Positions 19,392 to 63,892 of a DNA stretch of 64,000 nucleotides are shown here, in pieces (the stretch's first letter is position 1; every line of letters starts with the position of its first letter). Made by a program: the position numbers and the translations under genes. This DNA is from Dimorphilus gyrociliatus. Lineage: Eukaryota > Animalia > Annelida. Below the pieces are notes generated by a model, which saw nothing but the letters and a program-made list of their open reading frames with translations, did no database searches and was not told where the DNA came from. The stretch lies in NCBI GenBank assembly GCA_904063045.1, contig CAJFCJ010000051.1, positions 13,231-77,230 of the forward strand. The letters run 5' to 3'.

Positions 19392-19441
19392 TGACCTACC
19401 ATGGTTTCATCTTCCCCTTTAGCAAAGACTCATCAGGGTCA
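19392..19441 (-). ncRNA. Type I hammerhead ribozyme (family C), G-U at base of stem II
   Basis: Reverse complement: UGACC CUGAUGA GUCUUUGCUAAAGGGGAAGAU GAAA CCAUGG UA GGUCA. Confidence 0.8.
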
Positions 19442-19748: not shown

Positions 19749-19809
19749 GACCTACCGTGGTTTCGTCCCCCTCTCTCTTAAATTTGTATATCAGGGACTC
19801 TTCAGGGTC
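19749..19809 (-). ncRNA. Type I hammerhead ribozyme (family A), core intact
   Basis: Reverse complement: GACC CUGAAGA GUCCC...GGGGAC GAAA CCACGG UA GGUC. Confidence 0.85.
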
Positions 19810-21813: not shown

Positions 21814-21870
21814 GACCTACCACGGTTTCGTCCTCCTCTCTATATTCATTACCAAGGACTCATCAGGGTC
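21814..21870 (-). ncRNA. Type I hammerhead ribozyme (family A), core intact
   Basis: Reverse complement: GACC CUGAUGA GUCC...GGAC GAAA CCGUGG UA GGUC. Confidence 0.88.
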
Positions 21871-22429
21871 TAGTAACCTACACCTACAGAGAGGTTGAAG
21901 ATTTCCAATAGGGAATTCTCTTCTTCAGGTTTTTTCAATATATATCATATCAAAAGTGCTATTTACAATGATACTGTTTAATGAAATATATACATACCAT
22001 TCTTTCATTGAAAGATGTATATTTTGAAAGGAATTGGAGAAGTGGTACATTTAACTATCTTCTTTTAATGTGGTGTTGACTCCTTAATCTTCAAACTACA
22101 AATGAATCCAGTGAAAAAATGCCTACATTGTATATATAATATATGGAGAAGCCTGTGGGAACATGCCACAAACATATCAACTATAGATAAAATTATATAA
22201 TGCCAATGTGAGAACATAAAGTTAGTAAAGTTTAAAAGCACAAATAATCAAATTAAACCTATGTGTGTGAGAAAGTTCTACAAACATGCTAAAGAGAGAT
22301 AAGAGTTTGTAGTAATTTGATATTTACATTATGGTATTAGTCTATATACTGAATCTAAAATCTCTATCTTAATTAACAACAGAGTTAGTGCTACCCTGAC
22401 AAATATGTTAAAAAAGGCTTTTATGAAAG

Positions 22430-28630: not shown

Positions 28631-31600
28631 GAATACGACAGAAGTCGCCCAGGGCAGAAGTCGCCCAGGACAGAAGTCGCCCAGACATTGATAGAAGTCA
28701 CCCAGAGCTGTGACAGAAGTCGCCCAGAAGTGTGATAGAAGTCACCCAGGACTATGACAGAAGTCGCCCAGAAGTGTACTAGAAGTTTACAGTATGCTTA
28801 ATAAAATGCAAAATATATGAAAATAATTTATGAAGTAGTTTGTATTTATTATTTGTAATCTCTGAGTGATAATGAAAGAAATTGTTTTACCAGTTTTTTT
28901 TGTAGAGTAATGTTTTACCACTTGATTTGTTGTGAAAATTGAATTGTTAGCTATTCGAATTAAGTGATTTTCTGCATTGTAATCCTTCAAAAGTAACAAT
29001 TGTTTTGATAAAAATATTAGTCTCTTTAAAATCATGTATATATCTTACAATTTTTTTTTAATTCTCATGATCTTTGACATAACAGGTATTTGAAAGAAAT
29101 TTATCAACATGGCAAAATTCTGCTTTGAATGTAGAAAAAAAATTAATAAACTAAAACAAGGAACATGTTCTCATTGTTCTCACAAACTTCATTGGACATG
29201 CTTATCAGGTTAGATTTTTCATATTTAAATCTTAATGTTTATGTTTAATTTTGTTAGATGGATTATGCTCCATTTGCTCATCTATTCAAATCAGAAGTTT
29301 GAAAATTGTTTTGAGAAGGTGTGATAATAGTTGTACAATCAAAGATGCAACTAAAGAATCTACTATTGAGGGAAATATTAAAGAGCCAATAAAAAATGCT
29401 GTAGAGAAAGATAAGACATTAGCAAACATTACGGTTACTTCTATGGATGTTGATCATGAACAAGTTGTTTCTCATTTCTCAGCAGATGCTATTGAAGCAA
29501 ATGAGCTACCTTTAAAAGACATGAACACAGATGAAATCAACTGTGCTGCATCAACTATGGAGGCAACTTTGGATGATGAGAGAATACCAACTGTTGAAGA
29601 TGTTGAGGATTCCTTTGAAAGTTTACCAGAGGAGATTGATGAGGCAGATGGTCATTTCAAAGTATTTGAAAATGGAAGTCAAAGAGAAAAAAAGTTGCTT
29701 GTACACAATAATAATTCTTTTACTATAAAAGGACAGTACAAAAGTAGTACTATTTGGATATGTAGTGTCAGGAACAAGAAAATCAGATGCCCTGCCAGTA
29801 TAATTCAAAGAGGTAGCAATTTTCACTTAGGTTCTAAATCACACATTCATCCACCTAAAAAAAACTTAGAGCAAAACATTGAAATTAAACTGACAGCAAA
29901 ACAAAGTGGAAAATGTAATATTAATGTAAGTGGAAAAAGATTAGCTGAAAATGCTATACTCCCATATGCAAATATGGGCAATATCTTGAAGGTAGATACT
30001 TGTAAAGAAATGATTAATTACCATAGAAGAAAAACTCAGCCTACTGAACCTATTGGAAGAAATTTTCTTTTAAATAATACTTTCATACCAGATGATTTTT
30101 TAAGAAAAGATATTTTTGAAAATGGTGAAAGAATCATTATTTTCTCCACATTGAAGCAACTCAATCTGCTTTCAGTTTCAAAAATTTGGTATGTGGATGG
30201 AACTTTTAGCATTGTAAAACAACCTTTCAAACAGCTGTTTTCTATTCATTCATTTTTGAAGAAAGAGGGAGCATTAAAACAAGTTCCTCTACTCTTTGCT
30301 TTTATGACATCAAAGAAGAAAAAAGCATACAATATTTTGTTTAGGGTAAGGGTATTTATAAAAATACAATTTTTTCAAAGTAAATAACATTTTATTAACA
30401 GACACTAAATGAACTTTTGGAATACAAAACACCAAAGAAAATTGTTCTGGACTATGAAAGAGCAGTATGGAAAGCTGCATTAGACAATTGGGAAAGTGTT
30501 ACACTAACAGGCTGTTTATTCCATTGGAATCAAGCTGTTTACAGAAAAATTCAGGTGAAAATGAGGCTATTTTTATATAAGATGATTTACTCTACATTTT
30601 TTGTTTTAATAGGAACTTGGATATTCATCAGACTTTAAAAAAAAAAGAGGACAGTGGTTTGAAATGAGGCAGCTTATGGCATTACCATTTCTTCCATTTC
30701 ACATAATTCCAATAGAATTTGGAAGAATTAAGGATTACCTTCAATCAGTAAAAAAACTAGGTGATCTAATAAAGTACTTTGAAAGGAATTGGATGATGGA
30801 TAGAATTTGGTCACCAAAGCAATGGTCAATTTATAAAAATGCTATTAGAACTAATAATGATGTGGAGGGGTTCCATAATCGGCTAAATGGCAATTTAAGA
30901 GCAAATTCTTCATTCTATTTGGTAGTAGATGAATTAAAACGAGAGGCAGATCTTATCCCAGCATATCAAAGAATGCTATCAGAGAGAAAGATATTAAGAT
31001 ATCAAAGAAGACAATATAAAAATATGCAGAATGAAATATTTAAAATTTGGGAGAAATTTGAAGCTCATCAGATGACTTCATCACAAGTTTTGGAAAAATG
31101 TTGTCAACTCTACTCAGAAATGAAATGAAATGCATAAGATTTGTAGTTTAAAACTCATTACTGTACTTTGTAGTGTTGTTGTCAACATGTTTGGTTATGT
31201 AATATCTTATCTTTTGCCTATAAAAGGGCTTGATTCTGGTAGTTCGGTACCATCTACCCTAGAGGCAACATCTACTCTACTACTTCTAGCATCATGTGGT
31301 GGGTACCATTAATATCATATCTACAATTTTTTTATTGTCATGATCTTTGACATAAGAGGTATTTGAAAGAAATTGATGAACATGGCAAAATTCTGCTTTG
31401 AATGTAGAAACAAATTTAATAAATTAAATGAAATGCATAAGATTTTTAGTTTAAAACTCAATACTGTACTTTGTATTGTGATTGTGGGAATTTTCTGCTG
31501 TACTGATCCAAATAGAACCTCAAGTTTGTGCACAAGTTTAAGCAAATAAATGATATTTATGTGAAACCTTCAACAGAATGCCAGTATTTTATTATTTAAT

Positions 31601-32074: not shown

Positions 32075-33586
32075 ATGGATAATCAATGGGTTATACCCTC
32101 TTCAAAATACCACAAAGATGTAGAATATAATATTGCAAATTTAAAACATCAGTTAAATTATATATTTTCAACTGACTACAATATAAAATATTCAAAATCC
32201 CATATAAACTTGGAAAATCTTTTAACAACACATGTCAACCAATACAGATTGCTTGGTGGCACAACAATTAAAAAAATGAATGAAGATGAAGAAGGTTTTG
32301 AGGATTTGAAAAATGGTATTTCAAAATTAATCAAAATTTCAAAGAAAAGCATGAAAAAATACATTCAAAGTAATATGGATTTTTCAAAATATGTTCATTT
32401 ACCAAAATTAATGGAAGTAATTAAGGAAGAAAAAGAATTTAAAGAAATTTTGGACTTGTGTGAAAAAAATATTTATAGAAAAAATAAAAAGTGTCTTTAA
32501 AAATATGGTGAAAAAAAAGAAAAAATTTGCTTAAGTGTGAAAAAAGAATTATTAACATTTTATAGAAAAGTACATAAATTGGAAGAAGAGATTATACCAC
32601 AACAAGAAAACAATACTACAACAGAAAGAGAAATTGATCAATCAACAAGACCAGTTCCAATAATAGCAACAGAAGAAATTCCACAAACATCAACTATTGC
32701 AGACAACACTATTGCTACAACACTAAGAAAACAAACTGCAATAACTACAACAAGTGATGAAGAAATTATTGAAGCTGCAGCCAGAGCAGAAGCAGCAACA
32801 ACAGCATCAGCAGACACTGGAACAACTCTTCAAATAAGTGATTGTAATGCAGTCAATTATACACAAATGGATATTGGTTTATTAGAAGAATTGGGTATTA
32901 ATTTAGAAATTGGCCAAGAAATTGAGATGGAAGAGATAAATGAAGAAGAAGAAGAAGAAGAAGAAGAAATAGTAGATAAATTCTACATTGATTTACAAAA
33001 AAAAAATGAAAGAAAAATAGAGGTAGGTAATATGTTGATTGTTCAAAGAACTAATAATATTATTGTAGACACTGGTTCTTTAAATATAATTGATAAAACA
33101 CAAAAAATATTTCTCAGAAAGGTAAAACCACAATTTACAAATGTTACTGATTATACCATTCTTACAGATCAATTTATTAAGTTAGGTGATAAAAAATGGG
33201 AAAAGGTACAATCTATGATTAAAACAGAAAAAAAAATACAAATATTTTGTATTGAAGATTTAAAAATGGATGATTCACTTCCAATTATAACTGGTTGGAA
33301 ATTAATCACCAGTAATCTTTTTATATATTTAAAGAATATTCCAAAAGACATAGACATAAAAAAAATTGTTAAGCAGTTACCTTTTTCCAAAAATAATTTG
33401 TGTTTTACAAAAAAAACTTTTGACAAAGAAATTTGTCAAAATTTGAAAGTCATGGGATGTAAGTTATTAAATCATCCCAATGAAATATTCAAAAAAGAGG
33501 AAACTCTTGTTATTAGATTGCTTAAAGAATTAATGTCTGCTGTTAAATGTTATTATGTTGTTCAAAAATATTTGCTTTGTTTTTAG
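32075..33586 (+). pseudogene. Element-borne ORF (conserved N-domain + SGNH-like domain) with one in-frame TAA
   Basis: 32075-32500 and 32537-33586 are in one frame, separated by TAA at 32498-32500 and 12 sense codons. Shared motifs: ANLKHQLNYIF, DFSKYVHLPKLM, TILTD, IITGWKL. Confidence 0.7.
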
Positions 33587-35019: not shown

Positions 35020-37946
35020 GGGGGTCATGGAAAACGTCCACAATGGAAAACGTCCACAATGGAAAACGTCCACAAATTTATGGAAAACGTCCACAGACAA
35101 TATGGAAAATGTCCACACAAATATGGAAAATGTCCACAGATTAAATGGAAAACGTCCACAAGTAAAATGGAAAACGTCCACAGCTGAAATAGCAAATGTG
35201 CACAACTTTAATAGAAAGAATTTTCTTAACATAAAACCAAAAAAAATATTTACAACAAAGAACTTGAAAATTAATTGATAAAGGATTAGTGAGATATCTT
35301 AAAAGTATAAGAAAAATATTCATTTTATACCAGTTTTCTTTTCTAGTTATATCTACTTCCTGTTTTTTTAAGCTGTTTACTTTTGAGGAAAATTCATTGA
35401 AACTGCTTTAAAACTGGTGTTATATATGTGTAATAATTGTAAGTATTATTTTTCTTTATTTATCATAATGTATTATTATTAATTGGCAGGTAAAAAGTAG
35501 CGAATTTTGAATTAAATGAATGTTTTAAATGTAGCATTACATCAGGATTCAAAATGGCAGCATGCAAAAGTTGTAACAAACACTTTTGTGGAAAGGAAAA
35601 GCAAATGAAATGTGTACTATGCAAATACATATTCCATGTCAAATGTATTGAAGGTCAGACTCTGTGAATAATTTCAGTTTCACATTTTAAATATTACTTT
35701 TTAAATAGGAAAATATTGCACTCAATGCAAAGAAATAAACAATAAAGAAGTTATTATACAACTGAATAGATGCAAATTCAAAAAAACTCAGCAGAATGAA
35801 TTGAATGAAAGTAGTGCTATGCAAATGATAATGCCACCATCACAAATTGCACCTCAAGAGGAAGACATTAATGACAAATTTACTTCTCCAAAACCATCTG
35901 ATATTAATTTTTCCTTTCATTTTGGAGTTTATCAAGAGCACAGGATAGCAGATGAAATGGTTAATGATGAAGAACATATTGCAGATTTTTCTAGTGAATA
36001 TGCAGTGTCAACAGAAATTCCAGAAACAGTACCTGACTTTTGCAATGAAGTGGAAATTTCAACTGAAAATGATCAAGTATTTGAAAAAAGCATGTGTGAT
36101 GAAATTGAGCCATTCAAAATTCTTGAAAAGGCAAGTGCTAAAGGGAAAAATGTGTTGATACATAATGGATATTGGTATACATTAAAGTGTAATCGTGGTG
36201 AAACAACATACTGGACTTGTGGTGTAAGAACAAAGAAGCAAAAGTGCAAAGCTGCAATTACTGAATTGAATTACTCCTATACATTATCTAAAGCTGAGCA
36301 CTTTCACAGTCCTGTTAAAGACATTGAAAATAAACTTATTTTGAAAAAGAATGTCAGGGAGAAAGGCAAAGTTAATGTTCATCAAAATGGGAGAAGCATT
36401 GCAGAGGAAACTCTAATTGAATTCAACAAAAATGAATCTTTACCATCAATAAAATCTTGCATTGAAGTTGTTAACTATCACAAAAGAAAAAATAGACCAA
36501 AAGAGCCTACTGGTTTAAGATTTATTATAAAGCAAATGTTCTTACCAGAAAACTTCTTGAAAGTGGATATTTTTGAAAAGCAAACAAGAGTAGTAATATT
36601 TGCAACAGACCATCAACTTAATCTTTTACAATCAACAAATATTTGGTTCCTTGATGGAACATTCAAACCTGCAAATGATCCATTCAAGCAATTATACTCC
36701 ATTCATGGATTTCTAAAAAAAGATTCAGAATTGAAACAAGTCCCTCTCTTATTTGCATTCTGCTCATCCAAGAAAAAATCAGCTTATAAAATTATATTCA
36801 AGGTAAATAAGATAAATTCAAAATGTATTTCTTTAAATACTGTTAATATTTTATAGGCTGTTTTTAAACTGACTAATGGATTTCAACCAAAAACTGCCAT
36901 GCTAGATTTTGAAGAGAGTGCATGGAGAGCTATGAGTGAATTAGCACCTGATGTTAACATAATTGGATGTCTTTTTCACTGGTGTCAAGCAATTTACAGA
37001 AAGATTGGGGTAATGTATAAATAAAAAGTTTTTTATAACTTTTTAATAGTTTTTATTCAATCATTTATTAATAATAGGAGCTTGGACATCAATCACAATA
37101 TAAAAATCGCACAGGAGAATGGTTTGCAATGAGACTACTCCTCTCTCTACCATTTCTACCATCAGATCACATCAAACATCAATTTGAAAGTATAAAAGAT
37201 TATCTGCAAGAATGTAATGAGTTATCTCAACTGATTTCTTACATTCAAAATACATGGATTGATAGTACAATTTGGCCTCCATCAGCTTGGTCATGTTTCA
37301 AAAGAGCAATTCGCACAAACAATGATCTGGAAGGCTTCCATCAAAAATTTAACTCATCTTTTGGGAATAGAACATCATTTTACACAATTGTTCAAAAGTT
37401 GAAACATGAAGCAGATCTAATCAATGTGTTTGAAAAGCTTCTATCTGAAAAGAAAATCTGCAGAAATCAGAGAAAAACTTATAAGCATCTACAAAAAAAA
37501 ATCTTTGAAGCTTGGGAAAGTTTTGAAAGATCTGAAATGAATGTTTCTCAACTACTGCAACTTTGTTGTTCAATTTATCATCCATAATGTGTGATTTTTG
37601 AAGTTTAAAATGTTAGTTTCTAGCACTGTTTACTTTACTTTTCTTGTAATGTAACATTTTACAATTAGTTGCTAAATACATTTTCATAAGTTTGATAAGT
37701 TCTGGTGTACATAAAAATTTATCAATAACTTTATTTAAATATTCATTTATAATATACATTTACCTAAGAATTACACTTTTTCTCTTTTAAAGATATTTGT
37801 AGTGGTTGTGGACGTTTTCCATATATTTGTGGACATTTTCCATATTTCTGTGGACGTTTTCCATATTGTCTGTGGACGTTTTCCATAAATTTGTGGACGT
37901 TTTTCATTGTGGACGTTTTCCATTGTGGACGTTTTCCATGACATCC
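35020..37946 (+). mobile_element. Mutator-like DNA transposon (MULE), full length
   Basis: 9-bp TSD AGACTCTAT at 35011-35019 and 37947-37955. TIRs are made of tandem ATGGAAAACGTCCACA units. Confidence 0.95.
35554..37587 (+). CDS. MULE transposase, PHD + FLYWCH + DDE, 618 aa
   Basis: Exons 35554-35653, 35709-36802, 36857-37009 and 37078-37587 join in frame. Motifs: WFLDGTF, MLDFE, GCLFHW, TNNDLEGFH. Confidence 0.9.
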
Positions 37947-39416
37947 AGACTCTATTACCAGTATCTCGACCCTACGTTCTATAGTAATTAGAGGGTAACC
38001 TTTCAAAAATCGCAGGTATAACAATCAGGTAAGTCACTTTTCATAAAATGTAACAGAAGAAGACCTAGATTCAATTCTATGTTCCTTCCTCTGTACATAT
38101 ATGGCCAATCCTATTTGCATGGGGCGGTCCAGAGCCCTATTCATTACCGCACCATGAAATATAACTGAATCTAAGATAAGGGGTGATTTCACCTCCAATT
38201 TGGACTTAGAATATTTTTGAAAAATTTATTGACTTTTTTCAGTCGAAATTTTTCTAAGTCCAAAACCTAACACTGTGTTAGGCTGGACTTAGAATATTTT
38301 CGGAAAATATTTTTTCCAAAATCTTTCTAAGTACCCAGGCGAATGTAACGTTTTTACAGGTAATTAACATGACAATGAACTTAGAAAATTAATGATTTTC
38401 GCGAAATCTTTACAAGTCCAGAGCCTCAGTGAAGGCCAATTTTTCAAAATCGTCGGATTGCTTTCAAACTTGAATCCAAGCTTGCCCCTACGTTGGAAAG
38501 ATAGAAAAAAATATTTTTATTTTTCTACCCGAACTCGGAAAATTTTCGATTTTCGAAGCTCAGCCACTCCTGAACTGTAAGAGCTACATGGTCGTGTAGC
38601 ATATCAGTGAAAAGCTCTTTTCGAGCTCTATCACCTCCAACAAAATTGAAACGTCTAGGATGACGCATAACGAAACTCCTAAACGGCCCAGATTTGGGAC
38701 ATTTTTGTCACATCACTGATTTTTTTGGATCAAAACTAACTCTTTGATATATATATCCTTAGGGTACTATGTAGCATAAGGTCTGTAGACCCATGTTAAA
38801 CTTTCAACCCCTTATATATATCAGACACACTTGTTCCTGTATGTAAGGAATACACTGAGAGATGGTTGAAGGTAGAGGTTATGGTTACATTAGACTGCTC
38901 ATGTATGATTGTCAATGGGTTGTCTTTGTGTTGATTGGGAAACCAGAAGGGACCTTTTGTTGGGGAACTTTTGTTCACTGCCAACTGTCAACCATCTGTT
39001 CTCTCATAGAGAGGTGTCTCCCCACAAATTACCCCATTCTTTATTATTTAACAATTGTTCAGAACAGGTCCCATGTCTGTCCAGTCTGTACCTTCTTCTC
39101 TGCTGAGTTAAGTGTTGGTTCCATTATCTTAGGTTAGGGTTAGTTGTAAAGTTTCACTAATTTGTATCTTTTTAGGGGGCTATAGCTTAGGGTTAGGATA
39201 GGTTAGGGTTAGGGTTAGGGTTTTTGTAATGTTGAACTAGATACTAAGATCTAAGTTCTGATGAAAGTTGAATAACTTCCACCAAAGTTTCAAGAGATTC
39301 CACAATGGTATGGAATGCAAGAGTAAGAACACTCTGTACAAGTAAGACTATCTACAACTGATTGATGAAAAATGTTCAGTTTATGTTTTAATTTTTTGAT
39401 GGTTACTAAGAATAGT

Positions 39417-39466
39417 TGACCTACCATGGTTTCGTCTTCCCCTTTTGCAAAGACTCATCAGGGTCA
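39417..39466 (-). ncRNA. Type I hammerhead ribozyme, intact
   Basis: Reverse complement: UGACC CUGAUGA GUCUU UGCAAAAGGGG AAGAC GAAA CCAUGG UA GGUCA. Stem III is the palindrome ACCAUGGU. Confidence 0.92.
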
Positions 39467-40025
39467 TTTCAGAAGATAGCTTCACTTACACTACCTTGAA
39501 GGGGAGGTCAGGACCAATTCTGCAATTGTATCCTGCCTTGCATTCCATTTTTGTCATAAGATTGATGAATGTGTATATATTGAATGGAAGAGGGAATGTT
39601 TTGTAACTGTATGTCTAATGATGTTTGTGTGTGTTTTTTGTAATGTCAACTTGTGGAAGTTGAATTTTGTAATCAATGTATGTTTGTTTGCATGAATGAA
39701 CATATGAGTATTTTTGTGTTTTGTAATAATTTTTGTTTTAATTTTTTTGTAAGCTGGATGATCAGACATAGAATCCAACTTGTACTGTTCTTCAAACCCC
39801 TTGACTCTCCTTACTTCTGATTAGGTTTTTGTAATGTTGAACTAGATACTAAGATCTAAGTTCTGATGAAAGTTGAATAACTTCCACCAAAGTTTCAAGA
39901 GATTCCACAATGGTATGGAATGCAAGAGTAAGAACACTCTGTACAAGCAAGACTATCTACAACTGATTGATGAAAAATGTGTGTTCAGTTTTTGTTCTAA
40001 TTTTTTGATGGTTACTAAGAATAGT

Positions 40026-40075
40026 TGACCTACCATGGTTTCGTCTTCCCCTTTTGCAAAGACTCATCAGGGTCA
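40026..40075 (-). ncRNA. Type I hammerhead ribozyme, intact
   Basis: Identical to the copy at 39417-39466. Confidence 0.92.
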
Positions 40076-40938
40076 TTTCAGAAGATAGCTTCACTTACAC
40101 TACCTTGAAGGGGAGGTCAGGACCAATTCTGCAATTGTATCCTGCCTTGCATTCTATTTTAGTTGGATGATTGTGTTTTAGAGGATACATGTTTGTAATT
40201 TTAATTTTGGAACAGATTTTTTTCTTTGTACAATGTTTGAGTTATGTAGACTGTATAAAGTAAATTCATATTTGTCTGATAAGTCTTATTTCAACAAGGA
40301 AGAAATGGCTTTGTTTAATGAATTAATTTTGAATGGATATGGTTTTTACTTGACAAAGAAACAAAAATTACTTCAAAGAAACAATATTGTACTTTTCTTT
40401 GAACAGATAAATTATAGAAATGTATAACTCACCCTGGTTTTCTTACACGTTGTGTTCTGAAAATTTCTTCCTAATGCAGCCTGTAGAAGGTTTTTGGGTT
40501 ATTTTTGTCTTTGTTTTGTTGTTTCTTGAGGCTGATTTCTTTTTATGATGGTATTTTTTTTCAACTGATGATATGTGGCTTGTTGTTACCCTTTTATAGG
40601 TGGTGGTTATGCAATTGACATATATCAAGATATTGCATTTTTTCTTGAAGGGCATGTTTTACTGTGTAAGTCCTTCCTGGGATATGTCTGTTGACCATCT
40701 GTTGCTTCTATATGGTAAAGTAAATACAAGGGATTTATGATGGACCTACAAATTTAATGAACTACAATAAATGTATTTTTTTTGGTCTAAACAAACACAA
40801 CATCAAAATGGACTAATATAATGTATGTTTTCTAAAATTGCTTTTTTCTTCTTAGGCTTGATAAAATTATTCATTTGAAATATAAACATGCAAAGAATTA
40901 ATAATTTTTATGGTTGAAAGTAACACTTCTGATTAATT

Positions 40939-42000
40939 TTACTGTTGATTTGAAGCTTGGAGAATTGGTCTGTTTAATTTCTTTTTTCTTCCAGTTCTAC
41001 TTTGTTGTTGTTGAAAGACTTCTTTACACTTGACCATAATTTCATTGGTAATCAAGTGTTGAACAATATTTCTCAAAGAAGACATCTTTCCAGGCAGAAC
41101 AATACCATGAAAAGGATCTCCTCTTATGATGGTATTAATATCAATAATTTTTGTAAACATGTTGTTCAAGTTTTCAGATTGTGAGGCTGGTTGTTGATGC
41201 AGATCACTTTTTTTGATGTTATATTGCATAAATAATAAGCATTCATTAGTAACTCCAGTGCTTTTATACAAAGCTTTAAAATTATCATCAGCATCATTAA
41301 TGGTGTTAAAGGGAATGTGAAGTGCTGTTATATGACTTTTTATTTTCCATTTGGATATAATTTCTTTACAATTTTGAAAGGTTAAGCCAGAAATGTTTAT
41401 AATGAGAACAGTTCCAAAAAAGCTGATGTTTCTTTTAACATCTTCTACCTGAATTAAATCTAAGTCACCCAAACTTTCATCACTTAAAAGAAGTAAATTA
41501 ATTTTGTTGGGAAATCCTACAGCTGGTTGTTGTATTTTCATAAGATTGGTAATTTCTTCCTTTCCAAGATTCACTCCAATTTCTGTAAAAGATCTTACCA
41601 TTTCATTAATATTTGAATTGTGTTTTCTATTAATTTTCATGGTATTGTTATATTTTAGAATATCATCAGTTTCATTAAGTTGTTGTAAAATCAATTCTAC
41701 CAATTGTTCCTTGTTGATACTATTTGATATGCCTTCTTCATTAAGCCACAATTTTTCATTGCAAAATTTTTTAAACTTTAACATTTTTTCTACAACATCT
41801 TTCTCATATTGACTTGGATCAAAAGTTGGTGGGTGAATTTTATTGTCTCTTTTAAACCTTTGAAGATGATTATAAAAAGTTCCAAAATTGAAAAATTGTT
41901 CAAAAGAACATTGCAGGAAATGTTCCATTTCAATTGTTTCATTGATGATTATTTGGTCATTTTCTACTCTTTGAACTTGATTTGGTTGCATGTTTGCCAT
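40939..42000 (-). CDS. Element-borne protein with SGNH/GDSL-esterase-like C-terminal domain, 353 aa
   Basis: Open ORF with a splice acceptor 10 nt before the ATG. Motifs: LLLLSDESL, IISKWKI, LHIPFN, GDPFH (block V DxxH-like). Confidence 0.65.
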   Translation of the reverse strand: MANMQPNQVQRVENDQIIINETIEMEHFLQCSFEQFFNFGTFYNHLQRFKRDNKIHPPTFDPSQYEKDVVEKMLKFKKFCNEKLWLNEEGISNSINKEQLVELILQQLNETDDILKYNNTMKINRKHNSNINEMVRSFTEIGVNLGKEEITNLMKIQQPAVGFPNKINLLLLSDESLGDLDLIQVEDVKRNISFFGTVLIINISGLTFQNCKEIISKWKIKSHITALHIPFNTINDADDNFKALYKSTGVTNECLLFMQYNIKKSDLHQQPASQSENLNNMFTKIIDINTIIRGDPFHGIVLPGKMSSLRNIVQHLITNEIMVKCKEVFQQQQSRTGRKKKLNRPILQASNQQ

Positions 42001-42167: not shown

Positions 42168-45100
42168 TTAAATTTTCTTCTTAATCCTACGTCCAGTTCT
42201 AATTATTTTCTCCACAGCAGTTGTTGGTTGTAAATCATCTGTTTTATCATCCATCTTTCTTTTTGTGGCAAACTTTCTTGTTATTGTATCAAATTTAGGT
42301 CTTTTCTCTGGTAGAGAAGAAGGAGTAGTAGAGTTAGATGTATTATCAGACACATTTTTTCTTTTGTAAAAATGTTTGATTGTAGGTGGTACAGCTTTAT
42401 TCATTGAATCTTGGTATTTTTGTGGTGTTTCCTTATCTGATGAACTCTTTTTATCAAATAAAGATGATATATTGTGTTTTTCCTGTTTAAAGTAAACATT
42501 GTTATTAATTAATTTGAAATAACTACTGACATTGTTTGTAAAAGCAAATATCAGGGGAATATTTTTATATACCAAATAATTTTTTCCAAAATTTCTATAA
42601 GTTATTGCTATTTTTTTTAATAAGGGTCCAATATCATTTCTATATGGAATAACAAATGGTACTCTTGTAAAAACTTGACAACTGGTGTATCTGGCTAAAC
42701 CAAAGGGATAATAAAGAATATGTTTCATATTCAAGTGATAAACATATCTATTAATTTCAACAGTTGATATATCTTTTTCAATTTGTTCATAGGGAAATAT
42801 TGTTATGTTTAATTGATTTTCTGCAAAATGTTGATGTTGTATAAAGTTTTCAACAAGCTCATCATTTTTTAATTCTAAATATTTTCTTAATAGAAGGTGT
42901 CTTAGTGTTTGGAATATGTTGACTTTGGTATATTGTTCTTGTAAGTGGAAATACATCAATTGTGCACATTCTTTACATTGTAGAAGAAATATTTTTGAAT
43001 TTTTTGTTATCAAGTCTATTGAATTTTTCCTATAGAAGAAATTTAATCTAAGAGGGCAGAATATCTTTTCTCTGGTGTTAAAATATATGTTTAAGTCTTC
43101 AGGAATGCAAAGATTCTTATTTCTATTTTCTTCTAAATTGTATTGGTATTTTTCTTTCTTGTATTTTTCTTCAAGCACTGTATTTATTGCCTTCCGAATT
43201 TCTTTTGATGTGTAGCCTTGGTATAAAAGAGGTTTCATTACAGTTTGACAAGTTTGAAAAAAAAGAAATTGTGAGGAGCTATTGTTAAGAAATCTTTGAA
43301 ATTGAGATTTTAGCAGTCCTTTAAAAACATGCTTGGGATGAAGAGAACTCTTGTGAAGTTGATGAAAAGTATCACATTCTTTAAAGAAAGTCATATAATC
43401 AAGTTGATTGTTTGAAAGAAATCTTGTTCCCTTAAAGAGAGTTAAATCTAAGAAATTGATGCAATTATAGCTGACAGTTTCTTCAAACTTTAAATTTTTC
43501 AATATATTATTTGCTTTCTGAAGATACTTGTGAAATTCAGGCACTCCACTTGTCCAAATTAAGAAAATATCATCCAAATATCTCTTGTAAAATAGAGGCT
43601 TAGGCTTAATATTAAAGAGGTATAATTCTTCAATCCAAGCCATCCATATATTTGCATAGGCTGGAGCATAACTTTGACCCATTGCACAACCACTTTTTTG
43701 CAAGTAAATATTGTCTATAAATTTAAAGTGATTCTTATGTAAGTTGAATTTGAGAAGTTCAATGAGAAACATGTCAGGCCTCTCCTGGGAAGGATATTTT
43801 TCTAAGAAATATTTTATAGCTTTTAGTCCAGTGTAAGTATCAATATTGGTATACATACTTTTAATATCAAATGTCACAAGGAGAGAATCATCTGGAATTT
43901 TTATTCTATCCAGTTCATCTAAAAGGTGTTGAGAATTGCCAATATATGAAGAATGCAGCATGCTAATTGGCTTGAGGTAATGAGCTAAATATCTTGATAT
44001 TTCATAGGATTCTGTTCTTAAATTACTAACAACAGGTCTGCCTTTAGGAATTTTTCCTTTTATTAGCCATTGATCTGGTTCTTTATGAATTTTCGGCAAG
44101 CCATAAAATATTCTATTTTCAAAAGAATGCTTCCTTGTAGATACAGAATTTAACAAATGTTTATATTCTTCTTCACATAAACAAACTTTAAATGTTTCAA
44201 TTAGGTCTTTATAATACTTCACAGATTTTTGTAAAAACTGGTCACCACAAATATTAATATTTGAACTTGTTGATAATTGACAATATTGTTTATTATTAGA
44301 GAGTAATTGATTGCACATGTAGACATAATCTTCGGTGTTTTGTATTACAATACAAGATCCTTTATCTGATGGTTTAATTACAATGTTTAAGGATAAAAAC
44401 TTTGTTAATGACCTGAAGAATTCCTTGTCAAATTTTCTATATTTATTGAAATTGTCTTTAAAAATATTATTCTGTATTGCTTTTTTACAACATTTAAAAA
44501 ATTGCATCATATTATCACAGTCATCATCACTCTCTTCTGTATCATCTTGTTCATCTATGTAAGATATCACTTTTTCACATTCCTTTGGTTTCCATTTATT
44601 TTTAATAAATCTAAGATTTCCCACTCTTGTTTGACTATTTTGTTTTTTAATAATTGATAGCTTTTTAAAAAATTTCTCTAAATTGAATAGTGTATATTGT
44701 TTCCATTTTGTTGGTTTAACATGTTCATACACAAACTTTAAACCCAATTTTAAAAAATTATTAATATCATTAGGAATCTGATATTTGCTTAAATTAACAA
44801 TGTACTGAGTATTTAATTGTCTATAGAAAGTTAAAAATGCTACCTTGTTGATTGTTGCATCCATTTCACAGTTTCTCTCATTGGGATGTTTGCTAATTTT
44901 GTGTAAAGTTTTCATTACCAAGTCAATAGAAAACTCTTGAGCTTTCTTGGTTAAATGCTTGGATTTGGAGTTTCCAGTTGGATTTTCCAAATATCCCAAT
45001 TTTCTCATGTCTGTCAAATCAATAAGAGAGGCTTGATTATTTATAGCCTTTTGAATATCTTTACAGGAAGACAGCAGTTTGGTTCCAAAAGGAATGGCTA

Positions 45101-46790
45101 GAATTACGTTCTTGCAAGTTCCAAACTTATCTTTTAGTAATGTAGCTACTCCAAGGGTTTGTTTAGAAGAATTCAAATTAGCATGTATGAATATATATTG
45201 ATATTGAATATTCCAATTTGTTAAAATTGGTAAAATATCATCATAATTTAATTGACTGATGTTAATTATTATTCCAGTTTTAACACTGTTATATTTTGAA
45301 GCTGATAGTGAAATATTCTTTACTGCAACATCCCTAAATGAACTGTCAGAAATCATTAGAAATTCTGCTTTCATTGGTACATTTGGTGGTAGTAATTTTG
45401 AATAATGCTTTGCTTCTTTGTCTGATAAAAAATTCTTTCCACATTCTGCATAGAGATGAATCAATTTTTTATCTTTCCTATAATTATTTCTCAGTATCAT
45501 TCTCCAACCTTTATATTTTCTGATGTGATCTGTTATGCTCAAGACTAGTGAATTTATGCCATCAATAGTAGTATTAATATTATTTTGGATATTTTCATTA
45601 ACTTGATCTTCAGATCTCTTCTGTTCCAAAGCTAACCAAAGGTCATCATCAAATAGGTCAAGTTCACTAGAATCAATTAAGATGTTTGTATTAGTATCTA
45701 TGGGTGAATATGTTTTTAGAGGTGATTGTAATAGAAGAGATTCATTTCTTTTTTCATCCATAGGTGCTATTAAATGATTGCTTTCTTTTTCAACAAATCC
45801 AGCTGTTTCCAAATGATCAATGTCAATAAAGTTCATCTTTTCAATTACTGATTGATCATCTTTTGCTTCTTGAGCCTTCTTACAGATTGAGGTTTCACAT
45901 TCTGATTCATTAATAATAGATAAAACATCTTCTATGACTTTGCCTTCTAATTTGGTTGATTTTTCTTGGTGTTCTTTGAGACTTTTCTTGTTATTCCTGA
46001 TTTGGTCATTAATTATAATATGATTTTTCACAATTACTGGAGTTTCTTGAACAGTCTTGAAATTTTCTTCTTTCTGGATTATCAGTGTTTCTTCAATTTC
46101 TCTATTTGTTTCTTCTTTCTCAATCATTTGTAGATCTTGGATTTCTTTATCACATATCATTTTCTCAGAGACTAATTCTTTGTCCAGTTTCTTAATACTT
46201 GTGGTAATCTTATTTTTGGTGTCTTGATTTTTCTTATTATTTCCATTGTACTCTCCTTCAGGCATTTCTTCAGTTTGACCCTTTTTCTTACGGTTGACAT
46301 TGTTTTTACATCTCATACAGAATGTAAATAATATATCCTTTGTTTTCTGAACAAATTCTTTATCCAATTTTAAAGATTTTTCTAAGAAGATCTTGGAAAT
46401 CCATTTCTTGATATCAATCCCATCAAACTGTTTACATAGAATACCAAAAGTAGAACAATAGTTTTCCAATATGAGAAACTCTTCCAGATTTTCCATGTAT
46501 TTCTTTTCAATTAAATCTTTGAAATTGTTGTAATCTTCCTTCATGGATTCTTGGAAAGGCTTTGTTATAGCAAACCTATTTGTAAAGTATAAAGAGTCTG
46601 ATAAACTGCAGATTTTTTTAAAAGGAACTCTGGTATGTTTTTCAATATGTTTGTCAATGACAAATTTAAGTTGTTTATACATATCATATTTTGCTGTATT
46701 TAAATTGAGTTTGAAACATTCCTTTTCCTCAAAGATGTCTGGGTAAAACCATGGATAGAGTTGTTGCTTTGCTTTCTTTTTTTTTTCCAT
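42168..46790 (-). CDS. Penelope-like reverse transcriptase polyprotein (SGNH-like domain, RT, thumb, degenerate GIY-YIG), ~1540 aa
   Basis: Uninterrupted ORF with PLE motifs LKLGLKF, IKPSDKG, FYGLPKIHK, GRPVVS, FDIKSMYTNI, GCAMGQSYAP, YLDD, NFLDL and HPKHVFKG. A GIY-YIG-like remnant runs KIFLLQCKEC...YPFGL. Confidence 0.92.
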   Translation of the reverse strand: MEKKKKAKQQLYPWFYPDIFEEKECFKLNLNTAKYDMYKQLKFVIDKHIEKHTRVPFKKICSLSDSLYFTNRFAITKPFQESMKEDYNNFKDLIEKKYMENLEEFLILENYCSTFGILCKQFDGIDIKKWISKIFLEKSLKLDKEFVQKTKDILFTFCMRCKNNVNRKKKGQTEEMPEGEYNGNNKKNQDTKNKITTSIKKLDKELVSEKMICDKEIQDLQMIEKEETNREIEETLIIQKEENFKTVQETPVIVKNHIIINDQIRNNKKSLKEHQEKSTKLEGKVIEDVLSIINESECETSICKKAQEAKDDQSVIEKMNFIDIDHLETAGFVEKESNHLIAPMDEKRNESLLLQSPLKTYSPIDTNTNILIDSSELDLFDDDLWLALEQKRSEDQVNENIQNNINTTIDGINSLVLSITDHIRKYKGWRMILRNNYRKDKKLIHLYAECGKNFLSDKEAKHYSKLLPPNVPMKAEFLMISDSSFRDVAVKNISLSASKYNSVKTGIIINISQLNYDDILPILTNWNIQYQYIFIHANLNSSKQTLGVATLLKDKFGTCKNVILAIPFGTKLLSSCKDIQKAINNQASLIDLTDMRKLGYLENPTGNSKSKHLTKKAQEFSIDLVMKTLHKISKHPNERNCEMDATINKVAFLTFYRQLNTQYIVNLSKYQIPNDINNFLKLGLKFVYEHVKPTKWKQYTLFNLEKFFKKLSIIKKQNSQTRVGNLRFIKNKWKPKECEKVISYIDEQDDTEESDDDCDNMMQFFKCCKKAIQNNIFKDNFNKYRKFDKEFFRSLTKFLSLNIVIKPSDKGSCIVIQNTEDYVYMCNQLLSNNKQYCQLSTSSNINICGDQFLQKSVKYYKDLIETFKVCLCEEEYKHLLNSVSTRKHSFENRIFYGLPKIHKEPDQWLIKGKIPKGRPVVSNLRTESYEISRYLAHYLKPISMLHSSYIGNSQHLLDELDRIKIPDDSLLVTFDIKSMYTNIDTYTGLKAIKYFLEKYPSQERPDMFLIELLKFNLHKNHFKFIDNIYLQKSGCAMGQSYAPAYANIWMAWIEELYLFNIKPKPLFYKRYLDDIFLIWTSGVPEFHKYLQKANNILKNLKFEETVSYNCINFLDLTLFKGTRFLSNNQLDYMTFFKECDTFHQLHKSSLHPKHVFKGLLKSQFQRFLNNSSSQFLFFQTCQTVMKPLLYQGYTSKEIRKAINTVLEEKYKKEKYQYNLEENRNKNLCIPEDLNIYFNTREKIFCPLRLNFFYRKNSIDLITKNSKIFLLQCKECAQLMYFHLQEQYTKVNIFQTLRHLLLRKYLELKNDELVENFIQHQHFAENQLNITIFPYEQIEKDISTVEINRYVYHLNMKHILYYPFGLARYTSCQVFTRVPFVIPYRNDIGPLLKKIAITYRNFGKNYLVYKNIPLIFAFTNNVSSYFKLINNNVYFKQEKHNISSLFDKKSSSDKETPQKYQDSMNKAVPPTIKHFYKRKNVSDNTSNSTTPSSLPEKRPKFDTITRKFATKRKMDDKTDDLQPTTAVEKIIRTGRRIKKKI

Positions 46791-49700
46791 CACAACTTGT
46801 TATTCTTTCTTAAACAAATAACAAAAAAGAAACAAAACGTAAACTTTTATTTAATTAGCCTGTTACAAGTGTGACACATCCATTTGAGATACTTTTCTGA
46901 ATAAATAAATTTCAGATTATCCTACTATTTATAAACAGAGTGACGTTCTAATTAAAAACACACTGGTCATTTATTAAAAGGCACTCCTTCAAAAGATGAA
47001 CTGTAGGGAAATTGATAACCTTAATGGTGAACTTTTTTCCTTACAATCTAACGTTGAAATAAAAAAAGAAAAATATTTGTATTTTACATTAATATAGAAT
47101 GCCTGAAAAGGGCTCCAGAAAAATATCTCATTGCATTTATTACAAAGAATCAATTAAAACTGATAAAATTCATAGCCTAATGGCTGTCAATTTTATCTAG
47201 AAACAGAAAACTCTTCTAAACAATTTATAAAGTACTTACAATACTTCTGGAATATTCTTTTAGATGTATAGTTGATGGTAGAATTATTTGAGCAGCAAAT
47301 ACAATACTTCTGATGAGATCCTATTTAGATTTTTTAATATTGAGTTTTTTTACAAAAAAATTATCTTTTTTACTAATATTCTATTTACCTTTCTTTTAAG
47401 TAGATTGATTCTTCAAATGCACTTTTGATGAAAATATGCTGAAAAAATGGTAAGTTTAAAAAGAATTTTGTTTAAAGGGAAAGGTAGACAATAAATCAAG
47501 TAGAAAATCCTTGAAAAAAATTGATACATACATCAGAGTGTAGTCAAGAGACAATCCTTCCTCTATGGTGACGAATGGTAGAATGCCTATAACATAGGTT
47601 TATATACTCTTTGGAGAAAAGACCCCCATGTCAGAAAAGACCCTTGATAAACTGTTATCAAAACATATCACTTTCCAACACAATTTCACATTACATAACA
47701 GGAGATAAAGATTTTCTTATCAAAAACTGACAGGGAACCTGAAAAACCCTGATGGCTATATACAAATGCTAATACTTTATTTACAAAAGAAAAAGAAAGA
47801 AGTTATGTAAAAAAAATTGTTAATTTTGACCTGAATTTAGTAAAATATTTCTGACAGACAACTTTGATAATTATCATAAAACTAAAAATTATGTGTATTG
47901 CACTTTCTAATTGTTTAATTAGTTTTAATTAGAAACTAAAGAATTTCCACAATTTGTTTTTGACATTTGATTGAAAAGCTATATCTCTTGACAGTTAAAT
48001 CTCAAAATGTTAAAAATATTTAAATTTATATGAAATATAATAATGTATACACAACTTTACCTAAATTTTTACTTTCATAGTTGAAATTCTTGTAATAAAT
48101 AGTACTATATCAAATTCTTAAGATATAACTTTCAAGTCAAATAGGTTTTCTCTAATTCTTTTGCATTTAAACTGTCAATATGTGTAAAATTTATTAAAAT
48201 CTATGATAGCAAAAAGGACTTTGTTACCATTATCTAGTCATAAACATTACATATAAGGCTACCCTAAGCTAACGTTTTCAACCTTGAGAACAATAATTTT
48301 TAATAGAAGTAAATTTTGGAAAAAAACGGAGGTAAGGTAAAGTTCAGAATGGAACAGCTGGGAATTGAAGTCAATTGGAAACAACAAAACCATAGACCAT
48401 CTGGCCAACTTATAGCATCTGGATGAGAAATTGGAGGAGCAAAGAAAAAGCCAAGAGAAAAAACATATTGTAAACATTAAGGCTGCCCAAGAAATCTTTC
48501 CCATCTATGTTAAAACCCTAGATTTTATCTATGACACTATTAATTTTAATGATTATTGGAATTTATTCTATTTTTCTATTTCATTTTCAGCCTTTGATCT
48601 GTACTGGTAGGAATAGCTATAAGACTGCCTTTTCAAGCTGAACTAGAACAACCTGGAGCAGTCATACAGAGAGATCAACTATATAACAGTTGTTTCTGTG
48701 CACTAATAATTTTCTTCCTTGTTATACTCTTTAAAATTGAAGGCTTTGGTAACTGAATATTACCTAAAATATTTGGAGCACCTGATGTATATTGGATCCA
48801 GTAATTTTGTACCAAAATTTGTAATAACCAACTTTGATGAAGAGAGGCAGACTAAAAATTTTTTACATTTTACTTTGTTGTTGTTTTATTTGTTTTGAAC
48901 AAAATTTAAAGAATTTAAATTGTTTTCTTTACTTAACTTCTTGAATTGCTCTTTTTCTTGTAAGTTAAATTTTTCAATGATAATAATGTGCAAATTTTTT
49001 TTAATTATAATAATGTTTATTCAAATTTTTGTAACTTATCAATTTCATAATTAAAATTCTTTTAATAAACTGAAATATATCTGATTTTTAAGATTTAACT
49101 TACAAGAGAAATATGTTAATTTTAATTATTTTACATTTAGCTGAAAAATGAGCACAAACTTTTGTATAAACTATTAACTCAATCTGAACTGCACTTGCCA
49201 AAAAAATGAGAAGAGTTGTTCTTTGGATAAAACATATTATTATATTCCTATAGTATTGTCAATTGAAAGAAAGGATAGATTATTGTCACTATAGATGATC
49301 TAGGCAAACCTACAACAATAACACCAACCAATTTTATAAGATTGTCTAAGATACCAATTAGTGATAGGAAATACAACTAGTAAATCTCTTTCTTTTCCAG
49401 ATGTTGGTGTAATTGCCAATTGTGACTAAACTTGAGAGTTTAGCACTGTCATTTTATTTTTATGTTAATTCTGCTGTTCCTGAAGTTGGAATTGTTAAAA
49501 ATTTGAACTTTACTTCTTTTTGTCATCTTTCAATTCTTTCGTTTTATATTATTTAAAATTATTGTCAAGAAAATTGAAAAATTATATATGCTAATAATCT
49601 AATAATAACTTTTAATAGTTTTGAGTAGAAGTACAGGTTTTAACGAACCCTTTGAAGCTTAAAGCCTAGGGTAATATATTTGAAGTTAAGTGTAATGTCT

Positions 49701-49877: not shown

Positions 49878-51410
49878 CTATATTTCACTAAAAAAGTGTC
49901 TAAGTAGGTGATTTTGTTGTTGTTTTTCAGGAAGTTCATTAAATCCACCGTTTTTGGTTAGCAACTTATTTTGTAGTTGCTCAGGAATTGTAATAAAGTT
50001 TAATCCAGCTTTTTTCATATTTCTTTCAGTGTATGTTGTAAAATAATGGCTAGGAAAAACCATTTTCTCTAATTTTATAGGCTGAGTAATAATTTTACTG
50101 GAGGATGTTAAGGCCTTGCTTTTGGTGTAAAAGAAAATTCTTTTGAATGATAACTTCCATTTTAAACATATCTCAATAATATCCATAAACTTTAATTCTT
50201 TAATCTTAATGAATAGTACATTTGGTGCATTTCCAACTGTTTTATCCTTTATCTGGAATATTTCATTTCCTGAAACCTTATCAAAAGAATTATCAGTTAT
50301 TAGTATATAATCAAAATCTTCTTTCCTAAATTCTTTCTTAAATGCTTGGTCAATTTTGACATTTGTCCTCTTTAGGTAAGTAAAGCTGTTTAGCCGTAAA
50401 ACATTCTCAGTCTTCTTTTCTTTGTTCATTCTTTGCTCTTGTACCTTCTCTTTCTCTTTCAATTCTGATTTTTGATGATGCGTTATACTTTGTGCGTTTC
50501 CTGTGTTTAAGTGTTGATCTTGTTGATGCTCCTGTGGTTCAGTTCTTCTCTCAATAACTGGTGCCTTTTTTCCTCCATTTAGCTCTTGCTGATTTGCCAT
50601 TTCTGGTTTTTCTTTGGACTCTTGATGGCATGTTCTTTTTTCCAGTCTAGCTTTCTTTCTCTTTGGTTCTTCTAATTCATTTGTTAAGTCATATGCAATA
50701 ACTTTATCCTTCATGGCTGCCTTTTCTCTTTTTTTCGATATTCTTGGAATAATTGTTTGAGTACATTCATCTTTAACTTTTGGTGATATTTGAATACCAA
50801 TCTCCTGTGTTAATGGCTTATCTACTTGGACTCCAACCTCTTGAATAACTTGTTGTGTCTCTGTTGGTTGAGTAGGCATAGCTTCTTGTATGGTAGTATT
50901 TCCAGTTAATTGTTCCTTCTTGTTAGTCATATTGTCATAAAAATCTAAAAGATCCTCATAAAATTCATTAATATAGCTTTTAGAAAATTCCCTGATATTC
51001 CGTTTACTGTTAAGGACCTCACCATTTACAAAATTTAAAATTTTTATTAATTCTTCCCTAGAATCCACTAGCTGTAGCAATCTTTTTAAATAAAAATATT
51101 GATCAAGTCTCTTTTGTAACTTGTAGAAATTTTTAAAACACTTTTCAACAGTATTTATTAGTTGGGCCTTTACTTCAAACATTTCTTCAAATGTATTATA
51201 TTCTTGAAAGTATTTATAATACTCTAATTTATTATTTGCACCTAAATCTGTTCTCTTCACTTCATTGTTTAAAATATGATCCCAATGATTGTGTGTTTTG
51301 GAATTTTCTGCTTTATAATAGCATTGAAGTATATATCGCAGTTGAACTTTTAAATTGTTTACATTCACATCAATATGTGGATGAGCATATGGCAGAGTTT
51401 TGTACGGCAT
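49878..51410 (-). CDS. Element-borne protein (conserved N-domain, charged linker, SGNH-like domain), 510 aa
   Basis: Long open ORF in very AT-rich DNA with an acceptor 19 nt before the ATG. Paralogous to the 25.0 and 32.1 kb ORFs. Motifs: YILITDNSF, CLKWKL. Confidence 0.75.
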   Translation of the reverse strand: MPYKTLPYAHPHIDVNVNNLKVQLRYILQCYYKAENSKTHNHWDHILNNEVKRTDLGANNKLEYYKYFQEYNTFEEMFEVKAQLINTVEKCFKNFYKLQKRLDQYFYLKRLLQLVDSREELIKILNFVNGEVLNSKRNIREFSKSYINEFYEDLLDFYDNMTNKKEQLTGNTTIQEAMPTQPTETQQVIQEVGVQVDKPLTQEIGIQISPKVKDECTQTIIPRISKKREKAAMKDKVIAYDLTNELEEPKRKKARLEKRTCHQESKEKPEMANQQELNGGKKAPVIERRTEPQEHQQDQHLNTGNAQSITHHQKSELKEKEKVQEQRMNKEKKTENVLRLNSFTYLKRTNVKIDQAFKKEFRKEDFDYILITDNSFDKVSGNEIFQIKDKTVGNAPNVLFIKIKELKFMDIIEICLKWKLSFKRIFFYTKSKALTSSSKIITQPIKLEKMVFPSHYFTTYTERNMKKAGLNFITIPEQLQNKLLTKNGGFNELPEKQQQNHLLRHFFSEI

Positions 51411-58459: not shown

Positions 58460-59020
58460 ACTGACAGTATAAAGCATAGAATTTAGGGTATCTTTCCATA
58501 AATCTGTAGATACTCTTACTTGAGCAGTATTTGGATTAATGGTAAAAAATTGAGGTGCTGGGAACACTCCTACCAGCTGGTATTCAATTTTTCCTTCATT
58601 GTCTCTATCTTGTGTTGTCAAATCAAGGAGGAGTGGACTGATCACTGACTCTAACTAGAATCTGATTTAAAGGAAAATAATAGAATTATGACATAAATCT
58701 ACAAAGAAGACAGTTTTATGTTTAAGATTTTACTGTATCAGTATTGTGAGTTAAAGATTGAAGATTGTATTTGAGACTAATTGATCCAGTTGATGGATCA
58801 ATATGATATCTTTGCATTACATCTTCTGTACCAGTTATTTCATATCTGAAAAATATTAAAATGAATATACACATATTTTATTAACAAATATAATGTTACC
58901 TTAGTACATCATCCTGTATCCTGATCATTTGCTTTTACTTTAATTATTTGGTGACCAATTTGATATCTATCATTAATCGAAACTCTGTATCTACTTTGCT
59001 CAAATTTCAGTTGATAAAAG
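58460..59020 (-). pseudogene. Cadherin-repeat gene fragment with introns
   Basis: Three exon pieces: KFEQSRYRVSINDRYQIGHQIIKVKANDQD; YEITGTEDVMQRYHIDPSTGSISL; ILVRVSD and TTQDRDNEGKIEYQLVGVFPAPQFFTINPNT. They are flanked by GT-AG sites and carry stops and frameshifts. Confidence 0.75.

Positions 59021-63851: not shown

Positions 63852-63892
<41 letters not shown>

Follow-up and report, generated by a model that had tools for sequence, protein, structure and literature searches.

Hammerhead-ended Penelope-like elements probably stacked head to tail at a TTAGGG chromosome end of the annelid Dimorphilus gyrociliatus

The reverse transcriptases (RTs) of Penelope-like elements (PLEs) are the closest relatives of telomerase, and, among living systems, PLEs that attach to telomeres serve as the main model of how an RT could be recruited to chromosome ends; SART and TRAS of Bombyx are telomere-specific as well, as non-LTR (long terminal repeat) retrotransposons. 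As far as the accessible literature goes, telomere-attaching PLEs of animals are those of bdelloid rotifers only. Athena, Coprina and Terminon elements are endonuclease-deficient PLEs that attach to G-rich overhangs by means of reverse-complement telomeric repeats located beside a hammerhead ribozyme, and they form head-to-tail chains of 5'-truncated copies with short telomere tracts between them and host genes caught in the chain (PMC8557442, PMC6431247). Here we describe a stretch of 64,000 nt from Dimorphilus gyrociliatus (contig CAJFCJ010000051.1, positions 13,231 to 77,230, forward strand; hereafter the window), which ends in a terminal (TTAGGG)n array and carries two identical hammerheads 609 nt apart. 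We consider it likely that the window is a subtelomere that arose from repeated head-to-tail addition of PLEs without endonuclease activity; each of the two hammerheads probably marks the 3' end of a separate retroelement copy, the copies having been added successively to the chromosome end.

The arrangement is closest to that of Athena and the Terminons of bdelloid rotifers, in which RT-encoding PLEs likewise form head-to-tail chains at chromosome ends (PMC6431247, PMC8557442). As in these systems, short telomere tracts cap the copies that are truncated at the 5' side, a hammerhead and reverse-complement telomeric repeats make up the 3' end, and there are extra accessory open reading frames (ORFs) and host genes caught between units. 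In contrast to them, the telomere repeat of the window is TTAGGG and not the rotifer repeat, and the telomere complement is found 196–203 nt after the cut site in all six copies and not directly after the hammerhead. The RT ORF retains a degenerate GIY-YIG relic, a domain that is wholly absent from Athena, and the RT clusters beside endonuclease-bearing PLEs, in a tree that had no Athena reference. Fungal Coprina and the endonuclease-deficient PLEs of plants and protists are also telomere-associated, often at telomeres of the TTAGGG type, and possess hammerheads (PMC4209133, PMC8557442). Their hammerheads are, however, stable as monomers (PMC4209133), whereas in the window helix III is nothing but a palindrome, as in animal PLEs, and the LGR-type receptor and FLYWCH ORFs mark the host as an animal. 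HeT-A, TART and TAHRE of Drosophila, too, are retroelements whose head-to-tail arrays make up or occupy chromosome ends (PMC5537684), but they belong to another RT class and contain neither a hammerhead nor a telomere-complementary 3' tract that primes on the G-overhang. Systems of this kind, in which a hammerhead-bearing PLE attaches to telomeres, are already known; new in the window is the lineage, which is set apart by its TTAGGG telomeres, the relic of a dead GIY-YIG domain, the 200-nt tail and a terminal module that is separable.

The whole window was scanned with a descriptor of type I hammerheads (helix I of at least 4 bp, CUGANGA, helix II of at least 3 bp, GAAA, short helix III, UH). 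The scan yielded five hammerheads (Table 1), all on the minus strand; in 100 dinucleotide shuffles the same descriptor matched 0.08 times on average and twice at most. A 45-nt core was found without mismatches at 39417–39461(-) and 40026–40070(-), that is, in hammerheads B and A, and with two mismatches at 19392–19436(-), the number of matches expected in shuffled sequence being 0.00. The exact core matches and the descriptor scan thus confirm what a first-pass annotation of this DNA had reported, namely two identical hammerheads with a palindromic stem III at a distance of 609 nt. Read along the minus strand, both copies consist of the 5' strand of helix I, CUGAUGA, a 6-bp helix II hairpin, GAAA, the palindrome ACCAUGGU of helix III, the cleavage A and the 3' strand of helix I. 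The cleavage positions that the annotation had proposed, after A40031 in hammerhead A and after A39422 in hammerhead B, agree with this anatomy.

The catalytic core (CUGANGA, GAAA and UH triplet in the correct order) is intact in five of the six window copies and in the one copy from a related contig, L002. The sixth window hammerhead, which belongs to a second tail family (family X), carries CAAAA in place of CGAAA at ~18240–18176(-), a change of the core G to A that is presumably inactivating. This copy sits in a 1.57-kb segmental duplicate of the copy at 19.8 kb. Among the six window copies and the related one (6 distinct sequences, a small sample), 93% of the cells in helices I and II were paired compared with 23–54% in slid-partner controls, and three base pairs displayed compensatory double changes. 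Helix I of the L002 hammerhead shows a compensatory change, and a G.U closing pair is present in the hammerhead at 19441–19392. At the Rfam gathering score, the hammerhead motifs in the window had no match, and a relaxed search gave weak Hammerhead_3 matches only (16.8 bits versus a cut-off of 48.5, E=3.5). These sub-threshold scores fit the published minimal hammerheads of PLEs, atypical variants for which a relaxed, purpose-built descriptor was needed (PMC4209133). Hammerheads A and B are genuine type I motifs of the PLE type.

The sequences around the two hammerheads revealed what is duplicated. Alignment of 39219–39564 with 39824–40173 showed 97–98% identity at offsets of 605 and 609, due to a 4-nt indel, and the duplicated length is only ~325 nt (39223–39544 versus 39828–40153, 97.9% identical). 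The distal module, A, is contiguous with an RT-encoding element of 7 kb, and the proximal one, B, ends in a telomere tract. The A/C-rich spacer between the modules has no homology to the 3' untranslated region (UTR) of element A (local alignment score of 28 versus 25 ± 3 in shuffles); similarity to it was not found upstream of the distal copy, and it is not repeated within the window. With a single, 276-nt spacer that is dissimilar to the sequence upstream of the distal copy, and with an RT element on one flank and a telomere tract on the other, the tandem hammerhead unit of the first-pass annotation is not upheld: the A/B pair is not a tandem repeat with a period of 609 nt. Instead, 609 nt would be the length of one short insertion, as the hammerheads would belong to two successive insertions. 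The annotation had correctly seen that the distal copy starts with TTAGG on the plus strand; the proximal copy starts with a 22-nt tract of the TTAGGG type.

A third copy of the module occurs at 19.5 kb, and its 5' boundary agrees with that of modules A and B to within 4 nt (39544, 40153 and 19520, minus strand; start AATGCAAGG). One of the three module copies begins directly after a telomere tract. The module RNA is more structured than shuffled sequences (z = -3.2), and its C-rich, telomere-complementary end is predicted to be unpaired (P of 0.98–1.0). An unpaired C-rich end on a structured module RNA would fit a role in annealing.

Of the nine interstitial telomere tracts of at least 10 nt, eight are oriented as the terminal array. 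The telomere complement is located at the 3' end of each element's tail, ~200 nt past each cut site in the RNA sense, and this distance is kept in both tail families, which barely align with each other; the tracts themselves vary in length from 6 to 28 nt. A consensus fold across the tail families was weak and its alignment unreliable, and it was set aside. Family X also occurs as 5'-truncated tails at 18895–19029 and 17365–17452, both capped by telomere tracts. Within the terminal array, a fragment of ~55 nt at 63665–63720 recurs at 19055–19105 in the 19-kb stack; it probably derives from a third element family, of which strong 5' truncation has left just the 3' extremity.

Hammerhead A is located 864 nt past the stop codon of ORF353, an accessory ORF. 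The translation of the RT ORF contains the PLE motifs DKG, LPKIHK and YLDD, and the invariant columns of the alignment include D810/K811/G812, L899–K904 and D1074/D1075; a Pfam search of the 1541-aa ORF gave no RT domain match. Using the window RT in a word search, 79 PLE RTs were matched. The closest relatives are P0001 from Dimorphilus gyrociliatus (47% identity) and P0002 from a Logan assembly (44%), followed by identities of ~37% to GIY-YIG-bearing PLEs of fish and frogs and 26% to Penelope of Drosophila virilis. The window protein, P0001 and P0002 have a common C-terminal segment that lines up with the GIY-YIG domain found in their relatives. According to the alignment, four of the five catalytic positions of this relic are replaced (the first Tyr, Arg, Glu and Asn), and four residues are deleted after the YIG position. 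Pfam GIY-YIG did not match the window protein, P0001 or P0002, whereas P0004 and P0006 matched; a hidden Markov model built from 16 endonuclease-bearing relatives gave only 7–14 bits on the relic. On the strength of these sequence comparisons, the endonuclease of the window element is presumed to be inactive.

A tree of 64 RT cores, with Penelope as the root, grouped the window RT, P0001 and P0002 in a clade (support of 100) that is sister to nine endonuclease-bearing PLEs (99). From this tree, which comprised no labelled Athena or Coprina sequence, we read the window RT lineage as endonuclease-dead and derived from an endonuclease-bearing ancestor. The contig that encodes P0002 (L002) has a hammerhead ~920 nt after the RT stop codon, and the start of its tail resembles family X of the window. 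Two metagenome scans, one with the hammerhead pattern and one with RT peptides, returned no matches.

In its RT motifs and overall homology the element is akin to the endonuclease-bearing PLEs Penelope/Poseidon and Neptune, and it shares with canonical PLEs a hammerhead of type I in which helix II is long and helix III palindromic and which is thought to be dimeric (PMC4209133). Its 200-nt tail resembles the layout of an endonuclease-bearing Anolis PLE, in which the RT-binding region and the start of reverse transcription are found ~100–170 nt downstream of the hammerhead (PMC11167929). Unlike canonical PLEs, it appears to have no functional GIY-YIG, no 5' pseudo-LTR and no internal insertion with target duplication, and its 3' ends are joined to telomere repeats.

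From the observed sequence anatomy, motif conservation, degenerate endonuclease and predicted folds, we infer priming on the overhang, the order of events and any cleavage as follows. The element RNA (minus sense) would end in the hammerhead, a structured tail of ~200 nt and a few CCCUAA repeats. Its exposed C-rich 3' end would anneal to the TTAGGG G-overhang, the 3'-OH of which would prime reverse transcription by the element RT. The resulting cDNA would lengthen the chromosome end, and telomerase or the next element would then add on top. The first addition would have been the older short insertion at 39201–39820, consisting of hammerhead B, tail B and the 22-nt tract. The later one would have been the full-length RT element, extending from 39821 to at least 46793 with hammerhead A and tail A, and it would have been primed on only ~5–7 nt of telomere sequence (AACCTAA). 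If transcription read through both copies, the RNA could fold into a double hammerhead and undergo cleavage at each of the two sites.

Several observations weigh against successive additions of this kind. The junction under element A comprises AACCTAA only, which is weak when taken alone, and the 5' end of this element was not located. The telomere complement is 200 nt away from the hammerhead here but follows it immediately in Terminons. The 5' boundary shared by the three module copies is not predicted by random 5' truncation; it suggests instead a distinct RNA species of ~320 nt, a telomeric element that is non-autonomous. At the locus of P0001 (L001, contig CAJFCJ010000101.1 of Dimorphilus gyrociliatus), no hammerhead or telomere tract was found within 10 kb. 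The RT of this locus, which is 47% identical to that of the window, carries the same dead endonuclease relic, and L001 may be an old copy that was internalised or domesticated.

Modules A and B, moreover, differ by only ~2%, which leaves room for a single insertion: the 3' region of the RT element might have been partly duplicated internally, in the manner of a pseudo-LTR, so that both hammerheads arrived together as a ribozyme pair. PLEs are typically partial tandems with a hammerhead in each pseudo-LTR (PMC4209133, PMC11167929), the two modules are 97.9% identical, and a pair in cis would satisfy the dimer requirement. We nevertheless regard this explanation as improbable. The telomere-type junction of tail A falls at precisely the same point as in the other five tails, and so the duplication itself must come from two telomere-primed additions. 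At 19.5 kb the module is inserted alone, and a self-comparison of 39.8–58.2 kb for a 5' pseudo-LTR revealed no module copy toward the 5' side of element A. All that this comparison detected was an unrelated pair of direct repeats of ~340 nt (47834–48169 and 48803–49139, 70% identical). A TATA-like motif is present at ~47600(-), upstream of the RT ORF; together with the repeat pair it may represent promoter or 5'UTR features of the element.

We predicted the folds of the hammerheads alone and in pairs. In the minimum free energy (MFE) structure of the monomer, helices I and II form and helix III (ACCAUGGU) stays open. Cofolding of two copies gave -37.4 kcal/mol, as compared with -25.6 kcal/mol for two monomers (2 x -12.8), a gain of ~12 kcal/mol; the predicted complex contains an 8-bp intermolecular helix III and helix I in trans and corresponds to a classical double hammerhead. 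In the MFE structure of a 691-nt transcript that covers both copies, the helix III octamers are paired with each other, and one helix I is completed in trans. Because helix III is palindromic, the hammerheads would be expected to be active only as pairs; the requirement for a pair put forward in the first-pass annotation is borne out by these models. For family X, the helix III octamers at 19749–19809(-) and 21814–21870(-) are ACCACGGU and ACCGUGGU, which are perfect complements of each other, and each is not self-complementary by Watson-Crick pairs. The predicted gain of their heterodimer is 12.5 kcal/mol, versus 3.8 and 8.2 kcal/mol for the homodimers.

According to these folds, double cleavage with release of a 609-nt RNA is structurally plausible. 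The same annotation had proposed that this RNA carries a telomere seed. The complementarity to the telomere is real, but the seed (AACCUAA) would lie internally, at nt 204–210, and the 609-nt RNA would therefore have no 3'-terminal annealing site unless it were processed further. Since its seed would be internal, we take the 609-nt product to be a possible by-product of stacking and not a replicative unit.

One might still view the locus as a retrozyme-like unit flanked by two hammerheads, from which double cleavage would free a 609-nt RNA that may circularise and propagate via its seed. In animals, non-LTR retrozymes that carry type I hammerheads have been described and linked to PLEs (PMC7229834; bioRxiv 10.64898/2026.07.22.740005). 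They are short non-coding units, probably derived from PLE terminal regions, and the module-only copy of ~320 nt at 19.5 kb resembles a non-autonomous derivative. The identity of the two hammerheads, their palindromic helix III and the double hammerhead predicted both in trans and within one transcript are in line with such a unit. Known retrozymes, however, have units of 170–400 nt in multi-copy arrays of one unit and give circular RNAs (PMC7229834), whereas the copies in the window are single and telomere-ended. Only two copies are present at this site, and the 276-nt spacer between them occurs once; it is missing upstream of copy A and from the solitary module at 19.5 kb. One neighbour of the pair is an RT element and the other a telomere tract, and the seed would be at an internal position. 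We therefore hold a retrozyme-like unit to be highly improbable.

A further alternative concerns the role of the motif only and is compatible with stacking by telomere-primed addition: the hammerheads may no longer cleave and may be kept as a 3' RNA fold that is recognised by the RT. PLE mini-hammerheads cleave poorly in vitro (PMC4209133), and for the Anolis PLE catalytic hammerhead mutants were unimpaired in in vitro insertion and no RNA-seq reads ended at the cut site (PMC11167929). Cleavage in the window elements would sever the priming tail from the coding body, and the stack tolerates a copy whose core G is mutated. Strict conservation of the core in five of six copies and in L002, together with covarying stems, goes beyond what a plain stem-loop would need. 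On balance, we treat a non-cleaving fold as a tentative possibility, short of probable.

Family X provided a further view on the cut site. Starting 4 nt ahead of the cut site and continuing through the whole tail, the copies at 21616–21870(-) and 19553–19809(-) show 100% identity; within the hammerhead their identity is ~75%, and upstream they are unrelated. Such a sharp boundary of identity indicates recombination at or near the cut site. This boundary, the shared 5' end of the module and the stand-alone module would fit a more elaborate scheme, an independently evolved lineage of telomere-colonising PLEs with a dead nuclease, in which the ~320-nt module is separable and template switching at the cut site swaps tails. 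Paired hammerheads would cut the RNA, the RT would start on free tail RNA annealed to the overhang, and it would then jump to body RNA at the cut site, giving rise to exchanged tails and short non-autonomous telomeric copies. We put this scheme forward as rather doubtful: the module 5' end, the family-X boundary and the complementary helix III variants feed into it but do not prove it.

If telomere-primed stacking is the correct explanation, the window would represent a second animal lineage, and the strategy of telomere colonisation by PLEs would evolve repeatedly. With ordinary TTAGGG telomeres, a visibly decayed endonuclease and endonuclease-bearing relatives adjacent to it, the lineage would further permit a before-and-after comparison for the switch from primers made by an endonuclease to primers provided by the overhang. 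The constant 200-nt tail and the pair-dependent hammerhead would offer concrete handles on the question of what hammerheads do in PLEs.

Table 1. Coordinates of the features discussed, in window positions except for the last row.
Feature	Position	Strand	Description
Hammerhead A, type I	40075–40026	minus	50 nt; helix I 5 bp, helix II 6 bp, helix III ACCAUGGU
Hammerhead B, type I	39466–39417	minus	50/50 nt same as hammerhead A
Hammerheads found with the descriptor	19441–19392, 19809–19749, 21870–21814, 39466–39417, 40075–40026	minus	
Terminal module A	39828–40153	minus	326 nt: 5' hairpin region, hammerhead A, 203-nt tail (40030 to 39828)
Terminal module B	39223–39544	minus	322 nt: hammerhead B, 199-nt tail; 97.9% identical to module A
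Telomere-complementary junction AACCTAA	39821–39827	minus	end of tail A; TTAGG on plus strand at 39821–39825
Interstitial TTAGGG tract joined to module B	39186–39222	plus	22 nt exact (39201–39222), then degenerate
Spacer	39545–39820	minus	276 nt, A/C-rich, single occurrence in window
3' untranslated region	40154–40938	minus	joins ORF353 to module A
ORF353	40939–42000	minus	accessory, 353 aa, carries domain X
RT ORF	42168–46793	minus	intact, 1541 aa: domain X, then Penelope-like RT, then degenerate GIY-YIG relic
Third module copy	19184–19552 (module 19520–19201)	minus	73% identical, alone, telomere tracts on both sides
Tail family X	17978–21875	minus	full-length tails run to 19553, 21616 and 17978, with a telomere-type tract joined to every one
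Family-X hammerheads	19809–19749, 21870–21814, ~18240–18176	minus	mutated core at ~18240–18176
Terminal (TTAGGG)n array	63617–64000	plus	chromosome end, G-strand on plus
Host-like coding spans	11590–14000(-), 29251–30387(+), 35801–36856(+), ~58460–58600(-)		
Domain X in the window	44826–45545(-), 40939–42000(-), 49878–51410(-), 25577–25981(-), 32090–32461(+)		
Domain X in relatives' loci	L001 10775–11479; L002 4361–5080 and 1132–1818(-)		

Besides the RT, the stack encodes an unannotated alpha/beta domain of ~240 aa, denoted domain X. It is found in the N-terminal half of the RT ORF, in two accessory ORFs and in two further ORFs of the stack. Searches with Pfam, by sequence against the PDB, and with Foldseek against the PDB (AlphaFold model with a predicted local distance difference test score, pLDDT, of 71) gave no significant match. 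An assignment to GDSL/SGNH was considered and rejected as unsupported, the AlphaFold model being without a significant Foldseek match.

By its coding content the contig is of invertebrate and not of human type, and host-like coding sequences are located next to or inside the stack. They comprise a receptor with LDLa, LRR and 7TM segments (LGR/relaxin-receptor type), two FLYWCH zinc-finger ORFs and a cadherin-like exon. Some of them have telomere tracts beside them that are short and degenerate, at 13757, 30341, 34426 and 58156.

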